Assembly: GCA_904063045.1 (NCBI GenBank)
Contig: CAJFCJ010000060.1
Span: 67,228-119,348 of the forward strand
Origin: Dimorphilus gyrociliatus
Lineage: Eukaryota; Animalia; Annelida
Direction: 5' to 3'
Length of the DNA stretch: 52,121 nucleotides
Shown: one piece after another, positions 20,387 through 51,183 of the stretch
Layout: every line of letters begins with the position of its first letter
Numbering within the stretch: position 1 is the stretch's first letter
Notes under the pieces: generated by a model
The model's input: only the letters and a program-made list of their open reading frames with translations
Told to the model about the DNA's origin: nothing
Database searches by the model: none
Position numbers and translations under genes: made by a program

Positions 20387-23300
20387 TTAAATAGAATTAT
20401 GTTGTTTCTCAACTTTATCCCTTTCCTTTAAAATATATTTAATAAAATGTCCAAAAGTAAAACTATCATTTTTCATGTCATTAATATTCATATTCTTCTT
20501 GAACTTTAGGTCAGTTAAAGTAAAATCTTTTGTGAATCTCCCCTGATAAGGAAAAAATTTATGAAGACTGTGAAACAATACATTTTAATGAAATGATAAA
20601 CCTGTAGAATTTTGAAATGTTGACAATGTCCACAATCAATTGACATTGAATTTTTATTGATTATGACAATTTCTTTACAGATTTGTTTTATGCAAATAAA
20701 ATATTGACAGTTTTTAAAGAATTTTTCATTCATTCTAAAACTTTTGTAATGTTTATCAATATAAATTTCTTGTTGAATGTTTGTTACAATTCTTGCTAAT
20801 TGAACAAATGTTTTATATATTAAAGCAAAATATGTATATTGTATCAAAATGTTTAAAAAAAAGAGTTTTAATTTCCTGAAAATTTTCTTGTTCTCTATTT
20901 TGCTTACCATTCGTTATTTTCTCATTTAATGATTGTCTATTAAAAAGAGAGAGAAAATTGGGAAAATTATTGAACATTTTTAAAAAAATAATAAATAAAA
21001 AACCAACATTGCCAGTGTAGACTTTAATTTGGAAAATTTTAATTTTAGTCGTATCTCCATTATGAAATAAATATATGGGTTAACAACAGCTGCTAGTGGC
21101 ACAAGACATCCAATAATTGAATTGTAAATATTGTTGTTGATATTCAATTCAATGGTTATAGAAATAAAAGCTGAAATTGAAAAGATATCGGCTGAAAGAA
21201 TGGAAAAACCAATGACAAACCTAAAATACATATTGGTGTCCAACATAACAGATAGGAAAAGACCAATACGTAATTGATTTTTGAAAGTGTTCTAGTGCAT
21301 TTGTAATACTGATTAGTCATCATCTTCTTTCTTGAATAATTAATTGAAATGAACATAATGCCATATATGACAAATATCAGGATGCTAATTGGAAACATCA
21401 TTACACCAAATATTATAAATGAATATATCCAGCCATCGCTTTTATCGCTTCTGATGTAGATATTTAAGCATATTGGTGTTTTTGAAAAGAAATCCTTATG
21501 AAAAAGACAAAATAAATCATACGTTTTCAAGTTAGAAAAGAAAGAAACGTAAAAAGTGGATGATGGTGGAGGTGTCTACTGCTTTATTGAAAGTAACGCT
21601 TTTCAATTAATTTAAGCCTATCACAGCCGCAAAACTAATATATTAGCAAACGGCAATGGAAACTTTCTCCAACACCCACCAAAATACTGGTACTGGAAAT
21701 AAGATTGGTGGAATAATTGCAATCGATGCTGCTAGAAGAAATGCTAAACAAGAAATTAGATATTGGTATTCTTTAGCTTTACTAGTTTTGAATGGTTGTA
21801 AAACTATTTCCAGCCTTTCAATTGACATGAATAAAACATTAGTTATTGAAAAAATCAATGAAAATGACATAATTGATCCAAGTATTTGACATAGTAAACC
21901 CTTTCTCCAGTTTTCTTCCCTTTCTAAATAATCATCTCCTGAAAAGTATACGTCAGCAATACATATTGACATTGTATAAAACGATGATAAAAAATCAGCC
22001 ATTGAAATATTGAAACGATAACTTCTAGACATTTGCTTATTCTTAAAAATAGTAAAAAGTATAGCAATAATATTGCTACAAACACCAGAAATGGAGAAAC
22101 TCCAACTAATGAATCTCAAGATATTTGAATAGATAAAGGTGTGACAAGTTAAAAACAATGGCGGATTTGGTAAACAATCAACACTTTGAAAAATATTGTA
22201 TTTTGAAATTAAACAACAAATTTGATATTGTTGACTTTGAACAATTCTAATATTTTTCAACCCTTTTACTGCTATTGTTAAGTGTTTTAAATGTATTTTT
22301 GTCATATTTAAATAGATTTCTTGCAGTGAGAAATGATTAAAAATATTGACATTCAAACTTTTTATTCTACAATTAATTAATTTCAATATTTTTAGTTTTT
22401 TTAATTTTTTCAAATCTTTTAAATTCAATTGAGTAATATTTGAAAATGACAAATTTAAAGATAATAAATTTTGGCAGTTATATTTAAATAAATGTTTTAA
22501 AACTATTATTTTCAATCAATTTTAATTCAATTACATTTGCAATTGATTTTACATTCCATTCTTTCAAATGATTATTCTTTTCTACTGAAAATACTATTAA
22601 TCCATTTGAATTTAATTCTTTTTTGTATAAAAAATTTCCAGATATTGATAATCTTTTTATATACTTTGTTATTTGATTAATGATTACTGCAGGTACATTT
22701 CCTTTTAGGTTACATTCCATATTATATTTAGGATGAACTGTGCATTCTTTATTTGTAAGATTGTTTTGAGTAGGGTCAGGGTAGCTTGCATTACATAACA
22801 ATTCATCAGAAGCTCTCCTACAGTCTACAATACCATTGCACAGTTTCTCTTCTGGAAGGTATAGGTATTCATTTTTACACTTAAAAAAGCCTTTGACTAA
22901 ATTCATTTCATATTCATTTCTTCAATCCCTATCGCTTTCCCTTTTCTCCATAAGTAGAAGAAAATACATTCACCTTCTACTGTACGGCAGCTGTATTCGT
23001 CATCTCCGTATAAACAGTGATTCACTCCATCGCAAACATTTTCAATAGGAATGCAATAGCCTTCCAGATAGCATTTGTAATGGTTTGAGGAGCATTTTAA
23101 TTCTTTGCACAAGTAGCTGTATGGTCTTGATATCAAGTGTCCCTTTCCATCAAATTCTATATCGCATTTCCAAAATTGTTCTTTGCACACACTTTCGGTG
23201 AAATCCGAAGAACTAGTTTCACACCCAGATTCGTCATACAAACAATCTGGAATTCCATTGCAACGAAGATGGTGTTCATAACACAATCCATCACAGACAA

Positions 23301-23533
23301 ACTGACTATTCTTATTACATTCTTTATCATAGATAACATACTTTAGATTAGTGGAAAAATAATTAAGCAAAAGGAGTAGAAACCTTTCTTTACTTGATCA
23401 ATTAGAGCATCGGATCTTTGACATATTTCATCAGTCTTATCAAAACAATCGTGACGACCATCACAAACTTTATATCTTTCGATGCATTGTCCATTATTGC
23501 ACAAGATACTAGAGAATCGTAAAGACAATAGAG

Positions 23534-23582
<49 letters not shown>

Positions 23583-25600
23583 AGAAATAATATTCCTACC
23601 TGATTTTTGAATTACCGATAGGTTGATCTAAATTTGTTTAAATATGGAAAAAAAAGGTTGCTGTCAATTAGTGGAATGTTGGTTTTTGATTTTTTGATAT
23701 TTTATTATACAAACTACAAAATTCTTCGTCAGAATTATCGAAACAATCTGATACATGATCACATACACTTGTATATTTGACAGTTTGATTTGTTTTAAAA
23801 CATGAAAATGTATTCTGTTGTTGTTGTAAACAATCCTTTTCATCGTCGTTCGTCAAACAATCATTTTCACCATCGCAAACATAAATTGAATTGATACAAA
23901 TGCCACTTTGTTCACAGAGAAAAAAGTCAAAGTTACATTCTATTTCATTTAAATCTTGTTTTGGTAGTGAATTTCTTAAATCTTTTGCTGGAAATATTAA
24001 TTCAACGTGTTCTTAACTTGATTAAAAGTTTTTAAACAACTAACCATCTAAAGTATGACAAATGATAATATTATCCTTTAAACCCTGTTCAGAACCATAA
24101 AGAAATAAACTGTATGATGGTCCAGACCTAAATGAAGAGTTATTTAAATATTTAAATAAGTTAGCATGTTAGTTATTATTTTTATTAAATAGTTTACAAA
24201 ATGTTGTATTCAAATTTTAAAGAATTTAATTTGTTGGATAAAGTTAAATGATTAGCAGAGTTTTCTAAAATTGGACATTTCATATCATTTTGTGGATAAA
24301 ATTGATTGGGAAAAACTAGTTTAAGCATGTAACTACTACTAGTAACCATAGTCAATTGATTTTCATCATTTTTTCTATAATTTACATCTAAACAACAAGA
24401 AAAATTGTGAACAAAATTTCAATAGATTTATTTAAAATACTTGAAATCAATATCAATTCTTCTTCAGATTGATGATCCTTAGAATTGTGTTTTATATTAC
24501 CAAATATAAAGGCTAGAAGAAGTTTATTCTTTGTTGGAAAATCAGTTAGTGTCAAATTCCTACTCAGACAAATCTTTTCCATTTCATTAGTTGAATATGA
24601 TCTTTGGGAAAAGATAACAATATAGCATACATGTTCAAAATGGATCATTGTATCCTTTGGACAATTGATAACTTTTCGGATTGTTGTAATGTTTAAAGGG
24701 TTAGATAATTTATTATATTAGATATTGTTTAGTTAATACCTTTGTTTGTACATTTCATTAATAGTCCTTTACCATTGATCATGTGTTTTATCCTATTTTC
24801 AGGGTAAGAAGACAATGAGAGAGAGAGAGAGAGGAAACATTTACTTACTTTCCTCTAAATTTTGGTTGTAATTCACAATCCTCAAAATTAGTGTTTGTAT
24901 TGTTGCATTTTATATTTGAAAGAGCAAAACTATAAGTTTCCTTTATGGGAAAATAACTTTCTTCGGAATGTTCATAAATTGTTCCAGAAATAAAACCAAT
25001 ATGCTTACAAATAACTTGAATTTCATGAAATCTTAAATTTTCAATAATGTAATATATGCTATTTTTTAAAATTTCAACTTGTCCAATCACTTCTCCACTT
25101 TGTTGTGGCATATTTAATTTTGGTAATACCTTGACAAATTGAAAATATGGCTCTAAAATATTTGAAAATATCTTTAAATAATCATTAAATAATCTTAAAA
25201 AATTACTAGAGCCTTTGTATTCCTTTCCTTTGCATATACATTTTTCTACAAAGCGTAAATTTTGTGTCCTTTCTCTAGATTTTTCAAAATTATTTTTTTA
25301 GCTGTTAGACACAAAACGGCGAGAATTTTCGGGGTGACCCTAATATATATATATTTATATAACCTTCTAATTCAGAATAAGTACACACAATTGATTTACT
25401 CAAGCCTTCCCTTTTACTATCAGTTATATTCATTGAGTAGTTACCATTGAGAATTATATCAACAGAAGTATTTTTAATATTCAATGGAAAATTAATTGCC
25501 AATTCACTCATTCTACACAAATATTTAGTTTGTTTAGATGAATTAATTCTAAATACATTATTCTTCCATCTTGCAAAAAGTTCATAAAAACCATTACCAG
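20387..25600 (-). CDS. GRL101/LGR-like receptor paralog 1: SRCR-like, CTL-like, LDLa repeats, LRRs, 7TM, C-terminal kinase-like domain (multi-exon; 5' end uncertain; homopolymer frameshift near 22500)
   Basis: SRCR-like 24845..25111 (VICKHIGF...LSNIKC..FEDC); LDLa CDG..DC.D.SDE repeats at 22800..23900; LRRs; SCLPNP..TC hinge-like segment, NISMADF, MSIER, CWTPI and NPYIY; spliced tail exons 20908..20936, 20602..20795 and 20387..20542. Confidence 0.85.
23539..23578. repeat. (GA)n microsatellite in an intron of receptor paralog 1
   Basis: About 20 perfect GA units. Confidence 0.95.
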
Positions 25601-26256
25601 TTAAATGTTGTTTTGTTTATTTGAATTGCAAAATATTGCAAAACATGTTATTTAAGTGAGTAAAATATCTCTTTTAAATGTGCACTCAGTAAATATATGT
25701 AATTTAAGAAGATTACTATTTACATTTTTAATTAACATTTAATATGTAAAGTTTAACAATAACAAGACACCTATAATATATTGTATTACTTTTTAAATTA
25801 ATATTATTAAGTCTAAACTATTTTTAAGGTTAAACAAAACTGAAAGAATTCTACAAGTTTGGTGTGTAGTGTCCGGAGTATGAAGAAAAGTTGTGTACCT
25901 AGTTGTATATGTGATTGTAGGAATTTCTGGCTCGTCACAATTATATTCATCTTTATTGTTATAAACAGTCAGAGTACTAAGCGCAAACAAAGAACTATAG
26001 AGTACTGTAACTTGCATAGATTAAAAAGATTGTGTTTGTAATCAGATACTGAAAAAGATTTTGAGAGATTGAGTAAAATTCTTACCAAGAGTTGTTGTAG
26101 AAGGTGTATATTATTCTCATTCTTTCAACTAGGCTAGTGTGGAGTAAAAATGTCTAGATTAACAGGAACTAATCACAATAAGTAAAACAAGGTCAGACAG
26201 AGAAGTTTCTCTTAACAACAAGAGAATAATATGCTTGAACTTTTTCCAAACAGTCA

Positions 26257-26280
26257 ATGATCACGTGAATGATCACGTGA
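26257..26280. promoter_or_regulatory. Tandem E-box duplication (ATGATCACGTGA x2) upstream of receptor paralog 1
   Basis: Exact 12-bp tandem containing TCACGTGA twice; function inferred only. Confidence 0.3.
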
Positions 26281-26498
26281 AAACATGAAGAGATGAGCTC
26301 TGTTCATACTGTTGTATGAGATTGAAAGATGAAAATCTGTTTGAAATCTTCCTAAGAAAAGATTAACCCTAACCTGAACATGCTTCGCAGTTATATAACC
26401 AGACCTTTAATTAATGAAATGTTTGTATATCATAAGATTTCAGGAGAAAAAAATCATTATCATTTCAAATTTTCTTAAATATAGGCCTACATAAATCT

Positions 26499-26543
26499 GA
26501 GGTGTTTCACTAGGAGGAGCCACAAGTCAAAAGATACAATAAT
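26499..26543 (+). repeat. Shared putative DNA-transposon terminus, copy 1 (copy 2 at 37228..37273)
   Basis: GAGGTGTTT(T)CACTAGG(A/G)GGAGCCACAAGTCAAAAGAT..AATAAT occurs at both sites. Confidence 0.7.
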
Positions 26544-26689
26544 CTACAGCTCAAACCAAAAAACACGAAAAGGAAATTAACATCGAGAGTAGTTTTTCAA
26601 ATAGAATTATAAAAAAGAAATATTTAATTTAAATATTGAAATATGAAACACATAAAGCAGAAAATCACAACTCTCCAAGAAGTATTGCC

Positions 26690-27430
26690 TTGTCTCATAA
26701 AAATTTGGGGTTTCCGTTGAAGCATCTTTTCCTATCACTTTAGTTTTTTTGGGCTCTTTTGTCTTTTGATTTTCCAACTTGGACACCATTGTGATTGGTT
26801 TTTTCTGGGTTAGTTTTAACAAGATTTCTGCTTTCTCAGCAGCTTCATATAGTTCTGCCAATGTTTTACATCTAGGATGTAAGGTGTACACTAAGTGTAG
26901 AATATCCCCTTGTAATCCTCTTTGTAAAACTTCCATCAGTTTCATTTCTTTCATTGTTGCAATCAATTGTGGGTTCATTGGTCTAGGTGGAGAAAACCTT
27001 TTTATCAATTTCTTTGCCCTGTTAACAAGCTGAACCACACTTTCACCATTAATTTGCTTTAAGGTAAACAGTTTCTCCTGATACTCCATAGGATCAAGAT
27101 CAAATTCGTCATGGAGGGCTTTCCATATTTCGTCTACAGTAGGCTCTCCATCAAGAGCTAACACCAAATCCCTAGCAGGATCAGTTAAATAATCTAAAAG
27201 ATTTGCTTTCACGACATCTTCACCAACCCAACCATAAGAATAACATGCCTGATTAAAGTCTTCCTTGAATTTTGAACACTCCCTGCTTCCATCATACAAC
27301 TTAAGGATAGTTATTTGGGGGCAGTCCCAAGCAGCCCTTAATGTTTGAATTAGTGTTGTGATATTGCTGGGGTTGAAGGATTAGAGTCTGTAATTACCCC
27401 AGTGGCATTTCCATTTCCTCCTTCTGCCAT
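26690..27430 (-). mobile_element. Ty3/Gypsy-type gag (capsid) ORF, frameshifted near its start and truncated at its 3' end
   Basis: YDGSRECSKFKEDF..ACYSYGW..LLDYLTDPARD..LKQINGESVVQLVNR..RGL fits retrotransposon gag; ATG at 27430, 40 nt after the PBS, is out of frame with the main ORF. Confidence 0.8.
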
Positions 27431-27469
27431 ATTTACTTTCTCCAAATTTTTTAATAAACCAAAATAATA

Positions 27470-27487
27470 ATTCTGTTAACTGTGCCA
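27470..27487 (-). promoter_or_regulatory. Decayed tRNA-Ser primer-binding site
   Basis: TGGCACAGTTAACAGAAT matches the PBS at 12965..12982 at 13 of 18 positions; all differences are transitions. Confidence 0.7.
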
Positions 27488-27491
27488 AATT

Positions 27492-29580: not shown

Positions 29581-30622
29581 ATGAATAATTCTAGCTATTA
29601 TCCCTCATTTCCAGAGATACCTAGCACGATGGACTGGTATATTGGGATTAGAGTTATTTCATCAATTTGTTTTATTATGGGTATTTTTGGAAATATTGCG
29701 AGTTTTATTATCTTCACCAAAAGTAAGATGAATTCAACAACAACGTCAATTTACCTTCGGTGCTTGGCGATTTCCGATATTCTTAGCTTAATATGTTGGT
29801 TCTTTCTATACATGTTTTATACAATTGAACTAAGGATCTTTAAGAATCATAAAGATATCCTATACTTTTCTTGTATGGCAAAGAATGCATTTGGCAAAAT
29901 GAGCCAACAAACAAATACATTAGTACTCTGCGCAATGACTATCGATAGGAGTCTATTTGTACTTTTTCCAACTAAAGCAAAATCTTTAGCTTCAAAGAAA
30001 CGTACATATTTTATAATATAACATTTTATCGTCTGCAGGCTATTCAACAATTTTTGTCATGTTCAAGAACGTGCTAATTGTTGATAATCCATTCAAAAAT
30101 AATTCTGGACTATACTTTTGTCTAACTAGAAGTGAATCTTGGAAAGTCTATTTTGATAAGATTAATCCAACTTTGGAGATTGTTTTCATGCATTATGCTC
30201 CAGGCATTATTCTTCTTATTACAAACATTCTAATACTGAAGGCATTGATATTGGCTACAAACAAGAGAAAAGAACTTTCCGCAACTGCAAATACTAAGGA
30301 AGATACGAAAGGTCGAAATTCATCAATTATTCTTCTTATAATATCAACATACACCATTCTCTCTTCAATACCAGCAATAGCACTATACATCTATGTGAGC
30401 TATTATTTGAAGAATCCATCAACGGAAGATGTTGCCTTTTTGAAAAAAGGAGCCCTCCTGTCGGAAGTTACTGTCAAATCAAATTCCGCTTTCAATTTTT
30501 ACTTTTACTGTTTAAGTGGAAGAAAATTTAGAAGTGAATTTCTCTTTTTATTCAAAAAGAAGCTAATTAAAGATCAAAATTCACAATTCAAATCAATATC
30601 AAAAACACAATCATCCAAGTAG
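29581..30622 (+). CDS. Class A GPCR of the FMRFamide-receptor-like/Srw-like expansion, interrupted by a frameshift near 30020
   Basis: GIFGNIASF, YLRCLAISD, AMTIDRSLFVLFP, YAPGIILL and NSAFNFYFYCLSGRKFRSEF; the two ORFs join in TM4 (KRTYFII / ILSSAGYSTIFVMF). Confidence 0.85.
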
Positions 30623-34398: not shown

Positions 34399-36219
34399 TT
34401 ACTTACGGTTAGAAATTATATCAACTTCGGTTAACCTTTCAATTTCATTCGAATCTAGTACTATAGATGTCGCTACAGTATTCAAATATTCAGTGCATAG
34501 GGTATGGCTTATTAAAATTGTATTTTCCACTTCTATTGTAGTAGTATTAACAATTATTGCTGATTTAGATAGTTCAATATTGATGACAGATGTTGATGTC
34601 ATATTTAAAACTGTATACAAAATTTTTTATAGAATCACTTTAACTAAATAAAGAACAAGTTACTGTACCAGTTATACAGGCTAACTTGACAGACACTGAG
34701 GAAAATTCTATCTTTATCATTTCACTGGGAAGTAGGCTAACATAATTAGTAATTCCTTGAAAATAGTAAATATCATCTGTTAGAATTGCTTTAATATCAT
34801 TGGATCCTTTAGTAATTGCCTCCACTTTATGTTTAATGTTCTCTTCTATAAACAAACAAAACACACAAAATAAGATTCAAATTTTTTAAAAACATTGACA
34901 GTTGACCCCAATATTATGATGGATAGGTGAATAATAGTTTTATTTAAAAAGGATAATATACTGAATTTCTGTGAAAACTCACTTGCACTTCTATTAGAAT
35001 GGCCATAAATTGTTAAGCTACAAATATCCAACATATATACATTTCTTAAACCAGTCTTATCATAAGAATTAATTAGCAAGTAACTTCCGGTGATAGATGA
35101 ATTTGTAAAGAATGTGTGTGTTGCATGATTACCATTAAAACTTGAGTTATAATCCTTAACAAGAAAATTTGCCTTGGGATTAAAAATAGTTTGAGGTGAA
35201 TCACTGATAGATATGTAAATATTTTGGAATGTTGCAGGAACATCTGAAAAACAAGATGGTTATTTATTTGTCCTTTCTTTACTCTCTCTCTCTCTCTAAC
35301 TCATTACCTTTCTTCTCTGAGGCTAAAATGAAAACTCCTAAAACATCTACTTGATTTTGGAAATTTATTCTAATAAAGAGGTCTGATTCTGAAATTTGTT
35401 GAAATGCTGTTAAACATTCCGTGTTAATAAGATCAGTTATGATAAAATCTTTGTGGAAACTTTTGAAATTTGATGAATTGATGACTTCATAATCTATAAA
35501 ATAAACATTTATTAATAAAAATTTAAGTCATCCAATGAAATTAACAAAAAGATATTTTACCTCTCTCCTCAACAAATTCCCCATAGACTTTTACATCACA
35601 AAGTGTTAGAATAGCATTGTTAACTTGATTTATTTTTAGAAATGACCCAATAGAATTTGATAGACAATTGAAACATTCATAATCATTAACAGTGTTTGCT
35701 ATTTTTACAGAAGTAGTCTGAGTAGCTTTACAAATATTTTCGTGTTGATCATAAAGATTTTTCTTAACAGTTATATTAAAGTTTATCAAACGTTCAGCTA
35801 TATAGATAAATGATTTTTTTAAATATCCCTATCTATCTATCTATTGTATTAGTTTACTTACGAAACACTTCTCTATTTAACAAACAGATTCTATTTATGT
35901 TGTAACTTTTCTTTAAATCTGCCATCCACCAACCATAACGTGCGTCGTGACTGGTGTGAGTGCAATAGTATTTTTGACCAACATAGCCAATATGAATAGG
36001 ATAGTCATTCCCTCTGTAAGCCCAGTGACCATCCCAAGTAGTACTTTGAAAAGCTGGACCATTCCTTATTAGATTACCTTCCTCAGCATACTCTACACAA
36101 AGTATTGTTACTGTGGGAAAAAAAATTCCAGCGTCCCTCACTGATTACCTTATTGCTAATGATTAATGATATTCACCTGTCTGATAAATTAAGATGAGAA
36201 AGTAGACGACGTCTTTCAT
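34399..36219 (-). CDS. Secreted F-type lectin (fucolectin/FTP) domain protein, multi-exon, at least one full and one partial FTP domain; 3' end uncertain
   Basis: Exon 1 36177..36219 MKDVVYFLILIYQT spliced to exon 2 at 36110: NLIRNGPAFQSTT..CTHT..WWMADLKKSYNINRICLLNR; next exon ends LTLCDVKVYG; a second domain end LDICSLTIYG near 35000. Confidence 0.75.
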
Positions 36220-37205: not shown

Positions 37206-37227
37206 TATATATATATACAGTATATTC

Positions 37228-37546: not shown

Positions 37547-40500
37547 TTATTTAATAATTGTATTCAAATAATTTCCATAAATTTGAATATCATTAAAATT
37601 TAATGCTATTGCATACTGAAATAAATCGTGGTAGTTAATATAGAATTTCCATTTGTTTGAGTTTTGCTACAAAAAAATACAAAAAATGATCAAATAAAAT
37701 ATAAGAGAATCCTATAAAAAAACAAGGAGAAACTAACAGTAAAATAAATATTCAATGTCTTAAGATTACTTTTAAAGTTTAATCCTACTGTTTGAAATTT
37801 TGAAATACAACATATCAATTGTTTTGAAAGTGAAAGTGCCAATGTCAATTTTCTTCTATATTTCAAGTTTCTATTATTAAAATGTTTATAAGTATTAATA
37901 GATGATACATAAACATTATTTGATTTATAGTTCAATAAGAGTTGACAAACTAGACCAAAGGAACAAAAGTTACAATTACATATAGAATAATAAATAAAGA
38001 AAAATAAACAAACATACATTGTGATTGAATTTTTCTTCTTTCTGAATTTAGTAACAATTCTCTATAAAAAATAAAGTTTTTTTTGTAAAATTTAATACAA
38101 AAAAGCTGTTTCTCTAATTTTACAGGTTTGCAGTTTCATTAGCCTTTGAGATTTTTCTATGATATGTCAATGAATTTAGGCAACTAGAAATAGCATAAAT
38201 AATTGCAAGTACTATATGTAACATAAAGACAATGAGGGAATGATAAATATTATGCAATTGGTAAGTATCTTCAATAGATATTATATCTGTAATAGAATTA
38301 AAATGTTAGATTAGGAAGAATATGAAAATTTCAAAAAAAAAAGAAAAACAAATGAAACAAACTTGAGAGAAATATAAAAGTTGAAAAACTGACATTGCAA
38401 ACAGTACTTGGAAATTTTATAAATTGCTTTTGTGTAAATTTTAACATGACTGATAGACAGAAAATGGTACAAAATAGCATTGAAATCAGACAATTGATTG
38501 TAATGAATGAATATATATCTTCAAAAATATTTGTTTTTAAACTTGAAATAATTGGTGTACATAAGACATTTCTTGAAAAGTAAACATCAAATGAAATCAA
38601 TGGAATTAGCGAAATGATTAAAGAGATTATAAAGAAAATGATAGCAATGATATAATATAATGATGTTTTAGTTAAGTATTTATTATGCAAGAAATGGAAA
38701 TAACTGTTTAATAAGATATACTTATTAATTAATATTAATGCTATTAATAGATTTGAATATATAATTGATGTTTTAGCCATTAATCCAAAAAATACGCATT
38801 GGAAGCCTGTTCTCCATTCATAATCGTGATTTATGTAGATACCTCTATATCTGGAATTTGTTGTAACAATCGATAATATATAACTACTCAATATTATATT
38901 TGATATAAAGAATAATTGATAAAATGCTTTTGAAGGCGTTTGATCAAGATTTGAAAGACAAACTGCAAGAAAATTTGCCAACATTCCAACAATTCCTATT
39001 ACCCAGAGTAATAATATTAAATATCGATTATTCAGCATATTTGAACAAGTATAGAGTACATCAGAATTTGGTTGACATTCAGTTAAATCAAATTCAAGTA
39101 AATTAACAAAACAACAAAGTGAATATCTTTGTGAATTTATTACTTGAATAGAAGTTAAATTGCTTAAAAAATCTTTTGATAAAAATAATGGAAGTTTAGT
39201 TTTATTTAAAAATAAATAATTTAAATTAATTAATTTTGATAAAGAATTTTGATGAATTGTTTGAATTTTTGAATTCATAATTTTTAAAATTTCAAGTTTT
39301 ATTAAAAACGATAATTGATATTGATTGATAGTTTCTATATGACTTTTTGATAAATCTAAATATAATAAATTCTTTGACATTTTAAAAAGTAACACTGGTA
39401 TTCTGATTAATGGATTATCACTTAAATCCAAATATTGTAATAATCCATAATCCCATAGACTACTTGATGATAATCTCTTTAATTTATTTTCTTTTAATAT
39501 TAAAATAACTAGATTTTTTGTTGAGAATTGTGGAATTTCTTGAATTTTTCCATTTGTTAATGATAAAAAATGCAAATAGTTTTCCAGCATTAAATTAATT
39601 TCAATAGATTTTGTCTTTGAAATTATTGATAGATAGGTTAATGGAAATTCAAATTTTAATGATAAATAATCAGATTCTTCTTTCATTCTACAATCAATTA
39701 ATGAATATTTTTCGCAATTACAATCCTTTGGGCAATTAGAAATTTCTAATTTATGACAAAATGTTTCATCATTTCCCAATTTACAATCAACTATTCCATC
39801 GCATACTTTATTCAATTCAATAAAAACTGTTTGGTTTTGACAACTAAATGTTGATTGGGGCCTAAAATTTTTACAATTAAATTCATCATCTTCATAATAG
39901 CAATGAATAACACCATCGCAAACATTTCTTATTGATATACAATAATGTTTTTCGTGGCACTGATATTCTCCAATTGAACAAGTTGTATTAAAGCAATTTT
40001 CAATTTCATAGTATGGAAAATTTCTAGCCGTTTGAATTTGATTGAATGAATTATAGTATAATTTACATCTTGTTGGTGAATTTTCACTAGAGTAGTTTAA
40101 AGCTTGTCTAATGTGAAGAGCGGGAAATTCTGTTTTTGTAGTAAAAAATGTTTTTCTTTCTCTTGAAGAAAAAAAAGGCAAAAATTATGTTGTTCAAAAA
40201 AGATGTTGAAAAATTTCCCTCTCACTTTCCATAGATTGATTCAACTACTGATTCACTGTGAAAGGAGTAGATATAAACAAAAATTGATCCAAAAAAATTC
40301 AAATAATAACAATAACAAAAAGAACATACTATCCCCTTTCAATGCAATCTTTCACATACACTTCAGTTTTATTTTCTAAATGACAGTCAGTTTTCAAAAA
40401 GCATTTATCTTTCTCATCCAAACAGTTGTTATTGCAATAATGAGTTCTACATTTCTCTAGTTATTTTTTAATTATGATATTTAATACAAAAATGAAGTAT

Positions 40501-43500
40501 ATTTTAATTTTTTTATCTTCATTTCTTTACCTCTACAAATTTCTCCTTCATCACTACCATCAATACAATTTTTATCATTATTGCATAATTGTTCTTTTGG
40601 TATAAATTGATTATTTTTGCATTCATAACTATTTGCAATATTGATATTTTTTGAAAATATATAATCTATGTTTGTTTGTTTTTTTTAAAAAAAAGAAAGA
40701 ACTGTTTTAATAAGTGTATAAGAATATTTTGTAAGAAAAAACAGAATTACAAAGGTCACCCTAAACAACAAGACTTAACCCAAAATTTCACAACAAACTT
40801 ACCACAATACCATTCATCACTTCCATCGGGACAATCTTTAATATAATTACAAACAAAATTTAACTGTAATTCTGTTTTATCATTGCATTTAAATGTAAAA
40901 TTAGCTTTTTGGCAATTATTTTCATCTGATTTATCCCAACACTCATAAGATCCATCACAGACATTTAAATAGTTAATACAATATTTTGAACTCTGACAAG
41001 TAAATAGCCAATTTGGACATTTTTGAGTTTTATCAATAAATAATCTTGAATACCAAAGTTGTACATTGTTCCTTTCACTATTAACTAACAGAAATATGTT
41101 TTATATATATAAATATAGATATATTCAATTAGGAACAAGTTTTTTTAATTACTTAGTGTTGTCTCGCAGAGAAAATGTGTAAATTTATAATTAGTTTTAG
41201 TTTCACAATCGTATTCTACAAACTTAAGAAAAAAAGTATAAACCAAACATCTTTTACTTTGATAGTTTTTCTTTAAAACTTGATTCACTGTTATTTTAAA
41301 TGTTTTTATTGTATAATTTAATGTAGTTTTATAATATCTGGTACAAGCAAACAAACAAAGTGAATATGTCAGAGTGAATTAATAATAGAAACTCACTCAT
41401 TTAGGTCATATTCTTCTTGATTAATTTCTGAAATGCTTCTTGAATGCATAGCTAATAAATTAACAGAATGAGAATAACGAAAAGGTAAGTATTCAAGATA
41501 TTCTTAAATTTATAAACTTACTTAATGGAGCTATTTTTCTTTGAATTCTATCCTGATTAAGGTAAACATTTTTTGCACTGTATGTTACTATAAGGCGAAG
41601 ATCTGTTAAAATTTGACGTTGTGCCAAACTACTTATTGTTAACAAAGTCATATTAAATCGATTGCAAAGTTGAAAGGCTTGAGAAACATCAATTTGAAAA
41701 GTTCCAAAAAATTTTTCAATATCCAATGGTAAAACTATTTTGTAACATTTTTCATCATATGTTATATAATCTTCAGGGCAATCTATGTATTTTATTAAGT
41801 ATTATTAGTTTATATTGTCTCCCTCTCTCTACTCAAACCGTCTATTTGCCTTTTAGTTAGATAGCAAGTTATTTGTGTTTGTGGATGCATGGAATCTTGA
41901 ATTTCTTCAAATGTACATTGTTCTAATTCTGTAAAGTTTACTGGACAAGCAAGATTAACAGTTCGAACGCGAGGTTTACTAACAAAAAAACTGAATTTAG
42001 CATATTTATATTCAAAATATTGGCAAATTTTCTGAAAATTTCGTTTTTAGAACATTAGAACAGAGAGAGAGAGAGAGAAATTGAACGTTACTTCTACAAA
42101 TCTATTTACAAACCATTTTGACATAACAACTGTTGCCGGCACATTGTATCTAAATATTTTCAATTCGCCTGTCAATTTTTCTGGTTTTTTAGCTGAATTT
42201 TTAAAATGCATTTGTGATCCTTGATCAAGTATAAATATTTCATCTGTTTCAATGTTTTATATATAGAAAATTGATAAATAGACATTAAGAGAAATAGTTT
42301 GCCATTTGTATTTATGACCTGGTTTTCTGACAATTGTATCATTTACACATTCAATTTCGCAAATACTTCGACCAAAATGGTTTAATTGACTACATTCAAA
42401 TATTGAATTACTATCTTTATTGCAGTGAATGGATAAGTATGGTGAATCTAAAAGATATTTAGCTGGGCAGGAAAAGTCAAACTTTTTGTAATTTACATAA
42501 TTAAAATGTTTGCAAATATAATAGCCAACGGAAGGAACATTGTCAGCTTCCAGGTACAGCATACCATATTTTTTGGATAGAAGTCTAGGATAAAAAATAT
42601 TTTTGTCTCTATCTGGATTTCTTTCAGATACAAGAGAATAAATCCTATGATCTAAAAAGTTTTTATCTTTTCCTTCAAATTAATGACAAAGGTATTGATT
42701 AAAATCTCTTTTTTGATTACCTAACATCTCATTTAAACAATAGACTTTCCTGCTTTCATTTCTACTGCTATTAAATCTTCTAATTGTCAAATTTCTTATA
42801 TCTCCATAAAAAGCAAATTTAGGTGTAACATGCTTAAATATCATATCCCATACTATATACAGCTCACGACAAATTTTTGTCAAATTTTCTGACTTGTTTG
42901 GTATATAAATATGAGATCTAGCTTTATATCTCACTTGAACATAAGTAGCAGAAGTTCTTTGAAATAGAACTAAAGAATGAAAAAAAATAAGAGAAAAAAT
43001 AAGTCAGAACAAAAAAGCAGCAAAATATTTAAATATTTTACATGGTATATTCCTTTTATAGCAGCCGATTCTGAATATATCATACTGATGCCAATGTTCT
43101 GTGCATCTACCATAATGTCTTAAAATAAAAAGAAATTGTAAAATTTGTAAAAACTCTTATTTAAATAAAGATTGCTTACATCATCACTTTACCACTGATA
43201 TAGCTATAATAAATATATGAAATCCTTTCCTCTAAAAGAGAGACAAAGTGAAAAGGTGATGTGCTTGATGATAATGCAGAAAAATTGATCATTACTCTTA
43301 AATGTTGTGTATTGATTTGGCACATTTACATTTTGATCAAAATTTGGATTTCTTGAACATAACTTTAAGCCTATTCTATAGAACATGCTGTAAGAGTATT
43401 TATTTGATTCAGTATCTGCTATAACTACAAAAACAGTTGTATTTCTTGATTGTTTAAGCGAATACATAACATTATAAGTGATAATTTGTTCATTTTCAAA

Positions 43501-43650
43501 AACAACATCACCAAATACTAGACTTTTAAAAGAAGAATCCAAAACTTCTCAAGGCAATAATTCACATTTAGAATTTTGAATTATGTTTAACGAAATATAT
43601 TTAAATAATATTGAAATAATTAATATTCTTAAATGATATGAAAAAAACAT
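37547..43650 (-). pseudogene. GRL101/LGR-like receptor paralog 2 (SRCR-like, TSP1-like, CTL-like, LDLa, LRR, 7TM, kinase-like tail), disrupted
   Basis: ATG at 43650 with signal-like sequence, then in-frame TGA at codon 34 (43549..43551); 616-aa ORF 38331..40181 with LDLa, LRRs and TM1-5; TM6/TM7 remnants ILTNCIIFIIP and LFLVA/LNSL broken by a stop and a frameshift; tail exons 38018..38061, 37738..37949 and 37547..37666. Confidence 0.85.
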
Positions 43651-43875
43651 ATTTTCCAAAAAGAGAGCAAAAAATATCTAAGCAGTTGAAGTAGAAAAAC
43701 ATAGATAAATGAACCAGAATTAAAAAAAAACATGACACTTATTTTTTAAATTCAATTATTGTAATTTCTTAAAAACATATTCAAATAAATTCAAATAAAC
43801 TTTTGTATTCCCTTGAGAATTATAATCAATTAACTTTCTCTTTCTCTGTCTGTCTGTTCTCTATGTATTTGTCTG

Positions 43876-44160
43876 TCTATCTATCTATCCATCTATCTAT
43901 CAATTTCTCTTTTTGTCTGTTATTCATTTCATCAATTGCTATAATCAATGAACACTAAATGAACACTAAGAAGAGAATCATGACAAAAAAAGTTGATAAT
44001 TTTTGCATAATATATGAAGAAAAATTAAGATTAGCACAAAAATTTCAATTAAAGATTCATGATTCACTCTTTTCAGAGTCGTAATTTAATTGGAAAAAGA
44101 AAATTATTCTAATGTTCTTTTAAAGGAGAAGAAGAAGAAGAAGAGGAAGAGGAAGAGATA
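43876..44160. repeat. (TCTA)n and (GAA/GAG)n microsatellites in the divergent intergenic spacer
   Basis: tctatctatctatccatctatctatc at about 43876..43901; gaagaagaagaagaagaggaagaggaagag at about 44126..44160. Confidence 0.85.
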
Positions 44161-46906
44161 GAAAAGATTTTTATTCCCTATACATTTTATTTTTTTGAAA
44201 AGTAATGTTGGTTTTTGTCTCCTTTCTCATTATACTTAATGAAATTGAATGTAAATCAAAAAATTTATGTTACTCTGTGAAATATTATCCAAATTATCAT
44301 TACAAAAAATTAACAATGGGAAAAACAATTGAAGACACTCCTTCCAAGATAACAGCTTTTATTGTTTTAAAAAGTAATAGCAAAAGAATTTATAAAATAT
44401 TACCTGATGCAAAATTTTTGAAAAAAAGAAGCAATTATGATATTATTGGAAAGCATGTATGCAAAGCGAATGGATATGATGATATGTTCATGATTATTGA
44501 GAAGCATTTTGAGGAGACAAACAGTAATTGTTTTATTCAATTGATATGACAAAAAAAATGGTACACCAATAGCCATTTTCCGCCATATTTCATTAATGAA
44601 AAAAACTAGATAATATTAAATATCTTTCTGTTTAATTAATTAAAAATTTCATTTAAATAGCTGACAGAGTTGTTAAATTAAAAAGACAAGCAGTATGTTA
44701 AAATTGCCTTTATAATAAAAATAATTTGCTGTTTTAAGTACCATTTATTTTAGTTTTCTTTTGCAGTGGCTAAAAAAAAAAAGGCTTCGAATTTTAAAAT
44801 CTAAAGGTTGTTATTCAAAGACCAACTATAAGCATACATTCAAAATTACTTGTATGAAAATCAACAAAAAATGTAAATGAATTAGAAAAGTCAAAAACAA
44901 AACGACAGTAACCAGTTTAAATTTTCTTTTATTACACTACCAGATTTCTATAGTTGGAAAATAGAGAATATTTTACGCGGCAAAGGTCATTTTAATAATT
45001 CGTAAGATACTTAAGAAGAAAAGGAAAGTTAACTCTTTATTTTACCACCAGGGTATAGAGAAGAGGAAGTAGACCTTGCTGCAGAGAGAAAAAGTTATTT
45101 TATATTTGTAAGATATATGAAAAAAAGTTATCTTTTGGCAAAACACGAGAACATATCTGTAGAAAATATATGCACTAAAAAATATCATTTACTATTCGAT
45201 GGTAGAACGAGTGGATATCCGCGAAAAGGATGTTACTATGGTAACGAGACACATTATCGAATTGATTCCAAAATTTTTATTAAAAATTGCATACCATATC
45301 AAAGATGTGATGAAAATCAGGAAGGTATTTAAAGGTGAATCTATTCACTTTTGCCCCATTAGCTCTTCCTTCCTTTTCTCTAGATATGAACTTAAAAGGA
45401 TATACATTCTTAAAAAGTAGAAAAAACAATAATACTTTCTATCCTCTGATTAATTCAAAAAAATATGGAAGTTTTTCAATTTATCTGTCAGATATGATGT
45501 TAAAAAAATTAACAGAGATTCTATTTTGTAAACATTTGAATTTTACATCAATTAGCAATTATGAAACCTATAACATGAACAAATGTGACTTAGGATTGCA
45601 ATTTACATCAAATGTTAAAATTTTCTCTCTAGATTGTTCTAATGATGTTAAATCATTGGCTGATTGTATTTTTGGTCTAAAATCCTCTACTATTTCTCTG
45701 GCAAAAAGTAGATTATGTGTTATAACTTGTGAAAATAGATATATAGAACAGAAATTTCGCTTTGTACAAAACAATTTGGATATAGTTTATCAACATAGTC
45801 ACAATGGATTATCAAGTGTACGAGGTCATATAGAACTAAACTTTAACAATTTTTGGGTTAATATATTAGTTTCTCCCTTTGCCAGTAGAACATTACAGGT
45901 ATTGAAAATCAATTTTCCCTGACGGTGAAGTATAGGCTTTGGTAAAAATTCATTTTCATTAATCAATGCCAAACTGAAGTTTACCACAAAAAAAAATGAA
46001 AAATAGGGAAAGATGTTGTACAGCATCTAGTATATATATTTAGGATATATAAATCCCAATGGAATATCTTCAACTTTTATTTTGTGAATGAATATGAAAT
46101 TTTTCCAAATCTTATCCAAAACACGTCTATCACTCTTTATTCTTTTTTAGTTAATATATAAAATTATTTAAAAGAATGTTTTTCTTTTGTTTTTTAAACA
46201 GTTAGTCTGTAAATATTTCAACTATAGACATTCAACTTTTCTGTTTCATAATAACAAAAAAGTTAAAAAGCATATTCCATTTCTGATCAATTGCAAAAAT
46301 TGTACCAGTTTAGATTGTTGTGATATTACTGTAGATGTAAAACTGTTAGTTTATAAAAAAGGAGATACTCAATTTGACATATCTTGTCACAATAATGCAG
46401 AAATATCTGATGGTTGGTATTTAGTTTTTTTCACATTTTTTTTTAAAGTTTTAAAATTTTAAAAAAAAAAAAAAAGAAGTTTGTTCTAATGAAAATGATA
46501 TAAAGTATAATGGAAGATGTTATTCTATCCATATATCTGGAAATATATCACATTTGTTTGAATCTTCATTGAATTATAATTATTTTGATGATGTCTACAC
46601 AAGACAACAGATAAATCAAGTTTGCAAGCGAGAAAATAAGATTGTCTTTAGTCCAGATTTAATGACTGAAATATCTTTAATTAATGAATTATTCAAGCTT
46701 TTACTTAAAACATATAGATCTACAGCAGAAATAAATGTTCCATTAGGTAGATTGATCAAAAGATTTCAATGTCAAATAATTTTTCTTTATTTTGACCAAA
46801 AGAATATCTTGTGCCCAGAGAAATAAGCGGAATGTTTGGCTACCTTCGATTAGAGTAAAGTTATTGATAATATAAAATATATAAGGGTTTAACAGGGAAA
46901 AAAAAG

Positions 46907-47112
46907 GGATGTTGTTGAAAACGCCCACAGTTTTACAGTTTTACCCTAACCCTAACCCAGCCCTGGACCCTGTTTTTAGGGCTTTATTGTTCCTAAACCT
47001 TAGTTTGGACCCACCTAATTACAAACCAATTGCTTAAATACTTTTCCTAACCTAATCCCAACCCAAAATCTTACCCCAAAAATACACCAAAATGGGCGTT
47101 TTCAACAGCCCC
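46907..47112 (+). mobile_element. Diverged third member of the 207-bp MITE family, in an intron of receptor paralog 3
   Basis: 206 bp; inverted ends GTTGAAAACGCCCA / TGGGCGTTTTCAAC; shares TTTTACCCTAACCCTAACCCAGCCCT with copy 1; flanks AAAAAAAAG / CCAAAAAAG could be a degraded 9-bp TSD. Confidence 0.7.
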
Positions 47113-50100
47113 CCAAAAAAGAGCATCCCACTGTTGGGGTCAACAACATCCGAAATGTTTTATTGAACTGATCAATGTTACGGTTTTTCATATCTTTTTT
47201 TCATACCAATGGGGATGGTTTTATTTCCTAATCCTATAATTTCTTATCAACTTTTTGATATTATAGAGAATTTACGGAAGCAAAGACAATTGCTCTTACT
47301 GGAATAGAATACCATTTTCGCAATCTCGACAAGTCGAGAGCAAACGAAAACCGCTTTCATATGAATGCTTTAATATCTAAGAGTATAAACTGTAAGGATG
47401 ACAATGAATTGAAATTTTTGGTGTGCGAACAGTCGCTTTGTAACTAGACAAACAAAACTTTATTAATCTTCATTTTAAATATTCTGTTTTAATCTTCCAG
47501 ATAACCAGAATAAGAACACTGAATGGAATTACAATGTATTATCTTTACCAGAATCCTCTAATTGTCCTTTAGAACTTTTCACTTGTCAAACGTACAAGTT
47601 TTGCGTAAGTATGCTAGATATTTGTGATGGTGACAATGATTGTTACGACGGAAGCGATGAGAGAGATTGTTTAAGCATGTACAAGTTTGTTTGTAAAAGT
47701 GGACAACAAATATCTGCCCAATTTGTGTGTGATTTTTCTGCTGATTGCGATGATAAATCTGATGAATTAAACAGTAAAAGAAATTACCAAAACAGTCATC
47801 TTACTACAAATCAGTAAATGTTTTTTTAATTAAAAAATAACTAATCATTAATCATATCCTTATCTTATCAAATAGATTATTTATATGCCAAAATGGTCAA
47901 AAGATACCGAAAATCTACGAATGTAATAATGTTAGAAATTGTTATGACAATAGCGATGAAAGTAGTCAATGCGAAGGTTTTTGAATAAAATATCTAGTAT
48001 ATCCATGACCTAATTCTGTTTAATAGAAAGATGCGAGACTGGCACATTTTGTGAAAATTACTGTGTGCGAAAAGAATTTAAATGCGATTTTCATCCTGAC
48101 TGCACTGATTTATTAGATGAAAGTGTAGTTAAATGCGATGATCGAAGTTTATATACTGAACAATTCTTGGAGAGAATTAAAAAACTTCCACCAACAACTG
48201 CCTATTGTACATTGGAATACGATTCATTTGGGAGGATAGTAACAAGGGCCGGATTCCCTTTGTATCAATTAAGTCATTGCGCAAATGTCACATGTAAAAT
48301 TGGAGAATATAAATGTCAAAAAAAAGGTTTTTGTATCCCTTTGGATAAAGTTTGTGACAAAGTATTCCATTGTTTGGAAGGAGATGATGAAATAAATTGC
48401 GGTATTGTATTATTATAGGCCTATTCTATTTAAAATCGTGTCAATAAATGTATATAGAAACATTTCGACCACATGCAACATTTCTTTGTAAATACGATAA
48501 TATTTTTCTAAATTTGAGTAAAGTTTGCAATGGAATTCTTGATTGTAAAAGTGGTCATGATGAAATATTTTGCTATAATTATGCTGAAATAAAATGCCCA
48601 AATTTATGTAATTGTCAAACTTTAGCAACAATTCAATGTTCAAATAGAAATGGTTATAAATTGAATGAAATCAAATTTAATTTTGGTATGAGAAAACTAA
48701 TTATAATAGAATTTTTTGGAGAAATATCTATATATCTAATGGAAAGTTTAACATGAACACAATTAATTTATCAAAGTAGTAATATTGAAAAAATTCCCAA
48801 GTTAACAACATTAAATCTGATAGTATTGAATTTAAGAAACAATAGTATAAAACAATTAACAGCAACAGATCTTGAAAATTATGAATCACTCCAAAATTTT
48901 GATATAAGTGAAAATTTATTTGATAAAATTCCAACTGAATTTTTTTCACCAACAATAAATATAATTTTTTTAAATTTAACAAAAACAAAATTAACAATAA
49001 TTGATAATGAAATATTCAGTTATTTAGTCAATTTAAAGACATTAGAAATGATGAATTGCAAATTGAAAACTGTTAGTAGTAGTCCATTTGAAAAATTAAT
49101 AAAATTAGAAAATTTATATTTGATGAATACAAAATTACCAAAAATTTTAAATTTAAATATGATAAGAAATTTGAAATCATTAAAAAGATTATATTCTGAA
49201 AGTTTTCTTTTATGTTGTATGGCAAAAAAGTTCAAGTCAGAAAATAAAGTGGACTGTATACCAGACAAATCTGTCATTAAAATATGCAAAGATTTAATTG
49301 GATCTCAATCATTGAGGATTGTAATATGGATTATTATATTTTTGGGTTTACTTGGAAATTCTTTAGCCCTATATATACAATTGAAATCTTTTAAACCATC
49401 TTCAATATTCTACCTATTTCTTCATAGTTCTGATTTATTATTTAGTTGTTATCTCACAGCTATTGGTATAACTGATTTATACTATAAAGGCAATTATATT
49501 GAACATGATACTGATTGGAGATTTGGTCCTTTATGCACAATTTGATTTCAATATCTATATCACTGGCTCCTTACTTTCTATTTGAGGTAAGAATAAAAAA
49601 ATATACATGCATTTTCAAGTTCTTATTGTAGTTGTTGTTTGCTGTAGTTGTTTACTTCTTTTAGGATTATTTCTCAAGATCTGTTGTTTGCTTCTCACTT
49701 CACATTACATCAGAAAGAGCAAATGGATGGCAATATTCATTTGCAACTTTTAGCCCCCTAACATTTTTCCAATTGATAATTATAATATATTTTTATATTG
49801 AAATAACAAGGGAAATTTGGAAATCAAAAGATATTAATAGAAGCCAATTTAGAAAAAGAATACTAAATATCATAAAGACAAGTTTGATAATTGTTTTAAC
49901 AAATGTTGTTTGTTTTATTCCCATTTCAATTTTAGGTTAGTTTTGTATTTCTTTCATAAAAACTGGTAATACAAAGTCTTTTCTGTTCTTTTTTTTAAAC
50001 TAGGATTTGTGGCTTTGGATATTAATCATCAATTAGATGAAGGATACTATCCTTGGTTTATTATACTGATTGTACCATTAAACTCTCTCTTTAATCCATA

Positions 50101-50194
50101 TATCTATTGTACAGCAACACTAATAGAATTTTTGAGACAAAAAATCAAAAAAAGGCTTAATGCTGTCAACATTTTGTAAATATTATTTTTCCAT

Positions 50195-50310
50195 GGGCAT
50201 GAGAGAAAATGTCCTAACCTATCCCATTAGTTGGCAAACTTATCTTCATTATCATCTTCTTAACTGTTAATTTAACCCTATACCCATTGAGGACATTTTC
50301 TCCCAATCCC
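50195..50310. mobile_element. Short (116-bp) MITE-like element in the intron after TM7 of receptor paralog 3
   Basis: Imperfect terminal inverted repeats GGGCATGAGAGAAAATGTCCT / AGGACATTTTCTCCCAATCCC; no clear TSD. Confidence 0.6.
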
Positions 50311-51183
50311 TTTTTTTTATTATATACATTTCTTATACAATATGTAAACAAATTTCCATTTTTAGACATAAATTAATTATTGATGCAAAACATTCTGAAA
50401 AAAAGAAATGTTAGTAAAAACTTTTAGTACCTTTTTTCTTATTAACAAAGTTTCGTTTTTTTTGTTCAAGTTTTAAAATTTCTATCAGAATTGGATAATG
50501 ATGGAATAATATTTGATGCTCAGAATAAATTTAATACACATGAAATTTGTGCTAAATATACTGTAAATCTATTAACAATTTGGAATATAGCAATCAGCAT
50601 ATGTAATGGATTGCTAAACGCCCATTCATTGAATTTAGGCATAAATGATAGAAAAGAAATATGTGTTTTTTCTGGGAATTTAAACTGTAAAAAACAAATA
50701 CCAATATTTCTCTTGGCTTTAACTGATATAGAAAGTAGGAAAGATTGCTCTCAAAATAGTCAAGATATAATGAAATTTGGGAAACTTTTAAGAAAGTATA
50801 TTTCAAATTATTCCCTACCGAAATAAAAAGAAATTGATTATCAAATATGTTGTAAATCCAATGCTGTTTGTTGTTTAAATAAATAGAATTTTATTTCAAC
50901 ACCAACAAAAACACTTTCATAGCAAGTAGGCTAAATAGCATCAGGTACTTTTATTAATTTACAGATATCCAAACAAGAAAAAGTGTTACTTATTATTAAA
51001 TCTATTACCATTTTTGTTTATCTTAAATATTGAAACTAACATTGAAAATGTCATGTTCCACAAGAATCACCAGGGTCAATAGTTCATGATGGAATACTCA
51101 TGTTTCGTCTTCTTCCTTACCATACTTTTCTAAGAATTCTGTAGACTTCTCTACCCTTTTGGCTTTATGTCACCAATCAAATT

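Follow-up and report, generated by a model that had tools for sequence, protein, structure and literature searches.

The question raised by this locus is what an animal receptor gene may encode behind its last transmembrane helix. The DNA analysed here (hereafter the window) is a stretch of 52,121 nucleotides from the annelid Dimorphilus gyrociliatus (GenBank assembly GCA_904063045.1, contig CAJFCJ010000060.1, positions 67,228 to 119,348 of the forward strand). At ~20.4-50.8 kb of the window lie three genes that combine LDLa repeats, leucine-rich repeats (LRRs) and a rhodopsin-type seven-transmembrane (7TM) domain, as recognized by Pfam; they are termed paralogs 1 and 2 (both on the minus strand) and paralog 3 (on the plus strand). 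An initial annotation had proposed that all three are spliced to a C-terminal pseudokinase domain. Our analysis suggests that these genes probably belong to a lineage-specific family of GRL101/LGR-like receptors, LDLa- and LRR-containing and of the rhodopsin type, each extended by a catalytically dead kinase-like tail.

The exons of the three genes from transmembrane helix 7 (TM7) onward were compared with those of four outside relatives, represented by the open reading frame (ORF) fragments P0002, P0008, P0011 and P0012 on contigs L001, L003, L006 and L007, which were assembled from other public samples. The seven loci referred to below are the three paralogs and these four contigs. The exons in the window are as follows, with a slash marking an exon boundary and z values obtained by local alignment against 1000 shuffles.

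21008..21170, minus strand: paralog 1, last 7TM exon, with the third extracellular loop, TM7 containing NPYIY, and helix 8; phase-2 donor AAT/GTTGGT; a 50-nt intron precedes it, and the unspliced frame stops 9 codons on.
20908..20936, minus strand: paralog 1, micro-exon of 29 nt, entered in phase 2 and left in phase 1, with flanks ..AATAG/ and /GTAAGC.
20602..20795, minus strand: paralog 1, tail exon a, the alphaD/alphaE-like part (FFKNCQYF...), homologous to the L001 tail (z = 6.7).
20387..20542, minus strand: paralog 1, tail exon b, ..FTLTDL..NDSFTFGHFIKYIL.., preceded by a phase-0 intron; stop codon at 20387-20389.
38124..38286, minus strand: paralog 2, last 7TM exon, with a degenerate TM7 in which NSLTY replaces NPxxY; phase-2 donor CCT/GTAAAA.
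38018..38061, minus strand: paralog 2, micro-exon of 44 nt.
37738..37949, minus strand: paralog 2, tail exon a; its 212 nt match the length found in L006, and alignment of the tail to that of L003 gives z = 6.9.
37547..37666, minus strand: paralog 2, tail exon b, ..INYHDLF..NDIQIYGNYL..; stop codon at 37547-37549.
50004..50175, plus strand: paralog 3, last 7TM exon, TM7 with NPYIY, and helix 8; phase-2 donor TTT/GTAAAT overlapping an in-frame TAA.
50366..50409, plus strand: paralog 3, micro-exon of 44 nt.
50471..50826, plus strand: paralog 3, tail as a single exon of 118 codons plus stop, opening with the split codon T/TT (Phe).

In each of the three paralogs the first intron is in phase 2 and the second in phase 1, and all tail introns are of the GT..AG type and 59-190 nt long. 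The spliced frames from TM7 to the end (179-190 codons) contain the terminal stop only, as compared with 16-22 stops in the other two frames, and the 44-nt micro-exon encodes a polar linker of 15 residues. The order given in the initial annotation (phase-2 donor, micro-exon ending in phase 1, then tail exon) was borne out for all three paralogs by direct reading of the DNA and by scripted exon assembly, and micro-exons of 44 nt in paralogs 2 and 3 and 29 nt in paralog 1 were found where it had placed them. For paralog 1 there is an alternative frame-keeping model, in which the TM7 donor is joined directly to an acceptor near 20868; the 29-nt micro-exon appears to be the likelier structure. The GTAA of the donor overlaps an in-frame TAA in paralogs 2 and 3, L003 and L007, and the frames of the other loci stop within 9-19 codons.

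The same plan recurs outside the window. Each of the four contigs carries a related receptor whose TM7 exon ends in a phase-2 donor; a micro-exon of 44 nt comes next, and then a tail exon with its acceptor in phase 1. The sizes of the exons are shared as well: the TM7-exon segment from the first full codon to the donor measures 170 nt in paralog 3, L003, L006 and L007; paralog 2 and L006 agree in having a first tail exon of 212 nt; and an additional phase-0 tail intron occupies the same spot in paralogs 1 and 2, L006 and L007. The first codon of the tail exon in paralogs 2 and 3, L003, L006 and L007 is the split T/TT (Phe), followed by an F-L-S/N pattern, so that the conserved F-x-x-F-L-S/N at this codon extends the conservation right up to the acceptor. 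The tails of the seven loci, which are 13-38% identical, have the same orientation, lie less than 400 nt from TM7 and run for 118-140 stop-free codons in DNA of 22-28% GC, where the other frames contain 15-26 stops. Judged by these sequences, the tail belongs to the conserved coding sequence of the receptor gene and not to an untranslated region (UTR), because four outside contigs share its exon plan.

Similarity between the tails themselves was detected mostly through the outside relatives. The tail of paralog 3 matches that of L003 (P0008) with E = 4e-4 in a library of 1.8 billion proteins, and the significant pairs in the shuffling test are paralog 3 with L003 (z = 17.7), paralog 2 with L003 (z = 6.9) and paralog 1 with L001 (z = 6.7), the highest z between any tails reaching up to 25. 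The tails fall into two subgroups, one of paralogs 2 and 3, L003, L006 and L007 and the other of paralog 1 and L001, which were joined by hhalign (P = 0.018) over 111 collinear columns from end to end. The homology among the window tails, as far as alignments tell, thus runs via these relatives, and the by-eye alignment of the three window tails in the initial annotation was not significant on its own. Profiles of the tail and of the TM5-6 exon retrieved only four ORF fragments, on Logan contigs, and a metagenome scan with the TM5-6 alignment gave no match. The conserved phases, exon sizes and open frames in seven deeply diverged loci support the splicing of receptor to tail that had been proposed, and we infer that TM7 and tail would be translated in one protein.

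What kind of domain the tail represents was approached by profile, language-model and structural comparisons. A profile built from 11 rows of tail sequence gave nine matches among PDB sequences at E <= 10, eight of which are the kinases CLK3/CLK4; the alignment spans alphaD, alphaE (..LH..) and the HxD-LKPEN-IL strands, which is the register of the initial annotation. In the ESM Atlas, the tails of L001 and paralog 3 reach recognition values of 3041 and 3105, respectively, which are typical of real families, and their nearest named clusters are almost all Pkinase, PK_Tyr_Ser-Thr or Kdo (scores 0.89-0.92). These two tails have no detectable pairwise similarity (z = 0.6), yet both reach kinase clusters, whereas a composition-matched chance antisense ORF used as negative control had a recognition of 958 and a top score of 0.73 with no kinase. 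The AlphaFold2 model of the L003 tail, computed with the tail alignment, has a predicted local distance difference test (pLDDT) value of 74.3 and a predicted TM-score (pTM) of 0.63, and consists of a helix at 33-52, strands at 55-57, 63-70 and 76-82, and a helix at 96-118; in this model the order is that of alphaE, beta6, beta7-beta8 and alphaF of the kinase C-lobe. In the structure search by VIA-align, which is independent of Foldseek, ~48 of the top 50 rows are kinases or pseudokinases (VIA Z <8), drawn from many kinase groups with no consistent subfamily, and the ESM Atlas shape search led to kinase-fragment clusters (TM 0.61/0.56 and 0.63/0.51). The claimed likeness to kinase subdomains V-IX is therefore upheld by the language-model neighbours, the CLK register, the AlphaFold topology and the structure search, and it lacks a significant match in Pfam and Foldseek; the checks proposed at the outset gave the same divided result, a kinase-like AlphaFold topology (L003) next to Pfam and Foldseek searches below significance. 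Provided that the tail is real, we regard its origin from the kinase fold as likely.

A much reduced version of that fold is left. Only helix 8, the linker of 15 residues and ~30 further residues separate NPxxY from the alphaD/alphaE region, so there is room for alphaC-beta4-beta5 at most and not for beta1-3. At the other end, the protein terminates 12-30 residues past the alphaF-like D-x-x-x-[FY]-G motif, and alphaG-I are therefore absent. In paralogs 2 and 3, L003, L006 and L007 the distance from the alphaE 'H' to the alphaF 'D' is ~15 residues shorter than in canonical kinases. The patterns of the Gly-loop (GxGxxG), VAIK, HRDLKxxN and DxWSxG occur in no frame of the window or the outside loci; in the alignments the HRD position varies from copy to copy (for example IND, FKS, MKE and VDN), the DFG position likewise (for example LTD, SDF and LNN), and the position of the catalytic-loop Asn is also degenerate and differs between copies. 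The AlphaFold model, in which the conserved [LS]-[TD]-[DF] motif stands directly behind beta8, suggests that this motif is the remnant of DFG and that the activation segment has been deleted; by spacing alone it could instead be the APE position. Motif search and alignments thus agree with the earlier statement that Gly loop, VAIK, HRD and DFG are absent or degenerate, while a whole pseudokinase domain, as then assumed, was not recovered: the tail is a truncated kinase core from ~beta4/5 to alphaF, without beta1-3 and alphaG-I. A full-length pseudokinase was rejected, there being too little sequence and no N-lobe. Being truncated and degenerate in its catalytic motifs, the tail is predicted to be no enzyme, with neither canonical ATP binding nor phosphotransfer.

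Several observations weigh against the proposal of a kinase-derived receptor tail, and they bear on different parts of it. The three window tails compared pairwise are not significantly alike (z = 0.6, 0.6 and -0.6). This lack of pairwise similarity, together with the abundance of GT and AG dinucleotides in AT-rich DNA, would be expected if the downstream ORFs and splice sites were chance features of an AT-rich 3' UTR or intergenic DNA, an explanation that we consider extremely improbable and effectively refuted by the E value of 4e-4 for paralog 3 and L003 in the library-wide search, the tail z values of up to 25, the identical sizes of the TM7-exon segment (170 nt in four loci), the micro-exon (44 nt) and tail exon a (212 nt), and the 118-140 stop-free codons at seven loci of 22-28% GC against 15-26 stops in other frames. 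The run listings for the source sample and the same study contain DNA runs only and no RNA run, and paralog 3 is disabled upstream of its tail, as described below. The splicing being deduced from DNA, the tail exons might be coding and still lie outside the main receptor protein, in a separate small downstream gene or a rare isoform, with the main product ending near the donor. Such an arrangement would agree with the TAA formed by the GTAA donor in paralogs 2 and 3, L003 and L007, with the stops within 9-19 codons in the others, and with the listing of the tail as a stand-alone ORF (P0008, P0010) by ORF callers. We hold it to be improbable overall, and a separate downstream gene in particular appears unlikely because there is no conserved ATG, the tail exon begins with the split codon T/TT at a conserved phase-1 acceptor with the conserved F-x-x-F-L-S/N residues at the boundary, and the 44-nt micro-exon is open only if entered in phase 2 from TM7; the constant orientation and the spacing of less than 400 nt in seven loci of only 13-38% identity also speak against it.

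The remaining objections concern the fold. Pfam hmmscan of every tail piece found no kinase family at E up to 10, phmmer with a single tail and the first profile gave no match among PDB sequences, and the CLK3/CLK4 matches of the 11-row profile (E = 0.36-3.3, the best being CLK4 at 0.36) are below significance. Foldseek searches of PDB and Swiss-Prot models yielded only matches at E >= 0.1 (Rio2, inositol-phosphate kinases, SAICAR synthetase). The good AlphaFold model is that of a relative (L003) and not of a window tail, the first model, of the L001 tail, was poor (pLDDT 51), and we know of no close precedent for a kinase core without beta1-3 and alphaG-I as a stable domain. The tail could accordingly be real, spliced and conserved, and represent a lineage-specific alpha/beta domain unrelated to kinases, whose likeness would stem from secondary-structure patterns and from the priors of AlphaFold and the language model. 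The absence of a significant profile match (Pfam; PDB profile E >= 0.36), the Foldseek result, the VIA Z below 8 and a length of about half a kinase domain would all fit such a domain. Four different methods, on the other hand, agree on one clan, two mutually dissimilar tails (z = 0.6) arrive at kinase clusters where the control does not, and the CLK alignment falls in the expected register; in addition, ~48 of the top 50 structural neighbours have kinase folds, and kinases make up, by rough estimate, a few percent of PDB representatives. We judge the unrelated domain to be unlikely, if the most credible of the three alternatives, and prefer the dead kinase-like tail.

If the kinase-like tail is accepted, its mode of action can be outlined as follows. 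The open frame would run on past helix 8 through a phase-2 intron, the micro-exon linker and a phase-1 intron into a module of ~120-140 residues, which would descend from, or at least adopt, the kinase core, comprising ~beta4/beta5, the hinge, alphaD, alphaE, the catalytic-loop strands, beta7-beta8 and alphaF, and lacking beta1-3 (the strands that bind ATP), alphaG-I and the greater part of the activation segment. Tethered ~35 residues behind NPxxY, beside the pocket for G protein and arrestin, the module may act as a pseudokinase-type scaffold that docks either an adaptor or a true kinase as its partner, or that gates or biases coupling as TM6, TM7 and helix 8 move. If the first intron were retained, the frame would end at the donor or shortly beyond it, leaving a receptor with an ordinary short tail. 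We put forward this specific scaffold mechanism tentatively. The initial annotation had spoken of a non-catalytic scaffold on a G-protein-coupled receptor (GPCR); its non-catalytic nature agrees with the degenerate motifs and the missing lobes, and the scaffold role is a conjecture. More speculative still, and in our opinion rather doubtful, is the wider notion that a large, lineage-specific LGR-type family in a non-sponge animal arose by an independent kinase fusion that was pared down to a minimal dead core, serving as the main G-protein-independent output of the receptor or as a switch of its coupling.

The receptors that carry the tail are in different states of preservation. Paralog 1 retains ERL, CWTP and NPYIY, is intact in appearance across the 7TM domain and looks functional. 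In paralog 2, DRY is replaced by INKY and NPxxY by NSLTY, CWxP is missing and the third loop is short; it appears to be a divergent receptor with degenerate coupling motifs, and L001 is similar. The canonical GPCR motifs are kept alongside the tail in paralog 1, L003, L006 and L007, and the micro-exon and the open tail frame are kept where the NPxxY and DRY-type motifs have been lost, in L001 (4125-4243) and in paralog 2 (38124-38286). Paralog 3 keeps NPYIY and an open tail frame, and has two lesions upstream:

48754..48756, plus strand: paralog 3, in-frame TGA within an LRR exon; the sequence is collinear with the L007 ORF through the TGA at 46% identity.
49537..49586, plus strand: paralog 3, junction of a frame-breaking deletion that removed the end of TM3 and most of TM4; the frame shifts near 49540.

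The collinear alignment with L007 shows that the TGA is not intronic. DNA contigs of the source sample placed on paralog 3 confirmed the assembly and contained no allelic variation fit for a selection test. A 21.7-kb contig of the same sample ('record 2', run X1) is ~80-86% identical to the TM1-3 and TM5 exons of paralog 3 (window 49323-49744), which indicates that a closer paralog of this gene exists elsewhere in the genome; a stretch of 234 nt in paralog 3 corresponds to 371 nt in this paralogous contig. The in-frame TGA and the frame-breaking loss at TM3-TM4 make it probable that paralog 3 is a pseudogene of recent origin.

The window is AT-rich (26-33% GC) with short introns of 50-190 nt. 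The bodies of the receptor genes upstream of the exons listed above were assigned by Pfam and alignment:

21219..25111, minus strand: paralog 1, with an SRCR-like exon, LDLa repeats, LRRs and TM1-TM6; ERL and CWTP are present.
38331..43542, minus strand: paralog 2, with LDLa, LRR and TM1-TM5/6; INKY replaces DRY, and CWxP is missing.
44205..49937, plus strand: paralog 3, with LDLa, LRR, TM1-2 and TM5-6; it carries the TGA and the TM3-TM4 deletion.

The Pfam matches include Ldl_recept_a (E = 2.3e-10), LRR_8 (E = 7e-11 and 5e-9) and, on the exons of paralog 1, 7tm_1. The LDLa repeats can be aligned between paralogs. Identity between the paralogs is ~27-46% even in the best-conserved domains, as in old duplicates, and neutral DNA between them must therefore be saturated. 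A protein search with an exon of paralog 2 returned no annotated protein from the source genome, the closest match being a GRL101-like protein of Haliotis at 26% identity. In their N-terminal parts (42257-46826, both strands), paralogs 2 and 3 contain further cysteine-rich ORFs without a Pfam match, which align with each other (E = 4e-5) as additional ectodomain modules before the LDLa array.

Other coding sequences are interspersed among the three genes. Between paralogs 1 and 2, at 29581-30622 on the plus strand, two ORFs (146 and 187 aa) belong to another rhodopsin-type GPCR with 7tm_1/Srw-like Pfam matches and no LDLa or LRR domains. An ORF of 230 aa at 26607-27299 on the minus strand, in locally GC-richer DNA (33%), has no Pfam match and a Gag-like look, and is possibly part of a retroelement. 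Downstream of paralog 2, at 35541-36141 on the minus strand, lie two ORFs, one of them with a weak match to the F5/8 type C (fucolectin-like) domain of Pfam (E = 2e-4), which is probably an exon of another gene.

Were the wider notion of an independent fusion followed by paring-down true, GPCR-kinase fusion would have arisen a further time, and no smaller module of kinase origin would be known to be under selection. The kinase-like tail itself implies that the kinase fold can shrink to about half its size and yet stay conserved. The proposed family would also place a module of kinase origin on a hormone-receptor scaffold that is classical for animals (LDLa, LRR and rhodopsin 7TM), for relatives of which ligand-binding and coupling assays exist, so that the role of such a fusion would become directly testable. 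The feature escapes standard gene callers and Pfam because a micro-exon of 44 nt and a stop codon overlapping the donor conceal it.

Fusions of GPCRs with kinases have been described in oomycetes, amoebozoans, choanoflagellates and sponges, none of them functionally characterized (PMC6033456, PMC12716839), and the GPCR-TKs are reported in sponges and in no other metazoan lineage (PMC12716839). The architecture for which the initial annotation knew no described family is thus catalogued in part, in these other taxa and not on LGR-type receptors or in other animals: we found no report of an LGR-type receptor with a kinase-like tail in any bilaterian animal, and full-text searches for such a tail on GRL101 receptors and for a 7TM-pseudokinase fusion gave nothing relevant. 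The GPCR-TKL/K and GPCR-TK proteins of choanoflagellates and sponges (PMC12716839) resemble the receptors studied here in joining a 7TM domain to a C-terminal kinase-type domain, presumably in one polypeptide here, and in their lineage-specific expansions. They differ in having full TKL or TK domains recognizable by Pfam and InterPro and a 7TM domain that clusters with no other GPCR family, as opposed to a rhodopsin-class LDLa and LRR receptor with a truncated, motif-dead core invisible to Pfam. The GPCR-bigrams of oomycetes and amoebozoans (GPCR-PIPK, GPCR-TKL and others; PMC6033456, PMC5784254) likewise combine a GPCR with a C-terminal accessory signalling domain, and the models proposed for them include an inactive accessory domain with the receptor signalling or scaffolding otherwise; their accessory domains, however, are predicted to be catalytic, and they occur in protist taxa, on a different 7TM type and without an LDLa/LRR ectodomain. 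In GPCR-PIPK proteins the linker from the 7TM to the kinase domain contains an LR(x)9GI motif (PMC12716839), which on direct reading occurs in none of the linkers of the seven loci. A relationship to GPCR-PIPK was rejected on account of the missing linker motif and of the sequence and structure neighbours, which are protein kinases. With Pfam silent and structural neighbours of no consistent subfamily, the tail was not assignable to TKL, TK or PIPK.

The tail receptors therefore resemble a GPCR-kinase fusion with an inactive accessory domain and stand outside those families, as well as outside the bona fide pseudokinases, because they have no N-lobe, no profile match and no alphaG-I. With the GRL101/LGR/RXFP-type LRR receptors they share LDLa repeats, LRRs and the rhodopsin-type 7TM domain. 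The view that canonical GRL101/LGR receptors end in a short tail holds for the retrieved GRL101-like relatives P0001 and P0003, in which it is unstructured, whereas here two or three more exons past TM7 add the kinase-like module. Among the best structural and language-model neighbours of the tail are minimal or atypical kinases without alphaG-I (Rio1/2, Bud32, NleH/OspG, HopBF1, Kdo/WaaP) and pseudokinase scaffolds (PAN3, PEAK3, RNase L, NFR5), which indicate that neither the activation loop nor alphaG-I is indispensable to a kinase core and that a dead kinase can serve as a scaffold; all of these keep the beta1-3 N-lobe, in contrast to the tail with at most alphaC-beta4-beta5 before the hinge. 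A non-catalytic kinase-like regulatory module directly behind a membrane receptor is also present in the receptor guanylyl cyclases, the kinase-homology domain of which is full, bilobal and ATP-binding, and is placed behind a single-pass receptor and before the cyclase.

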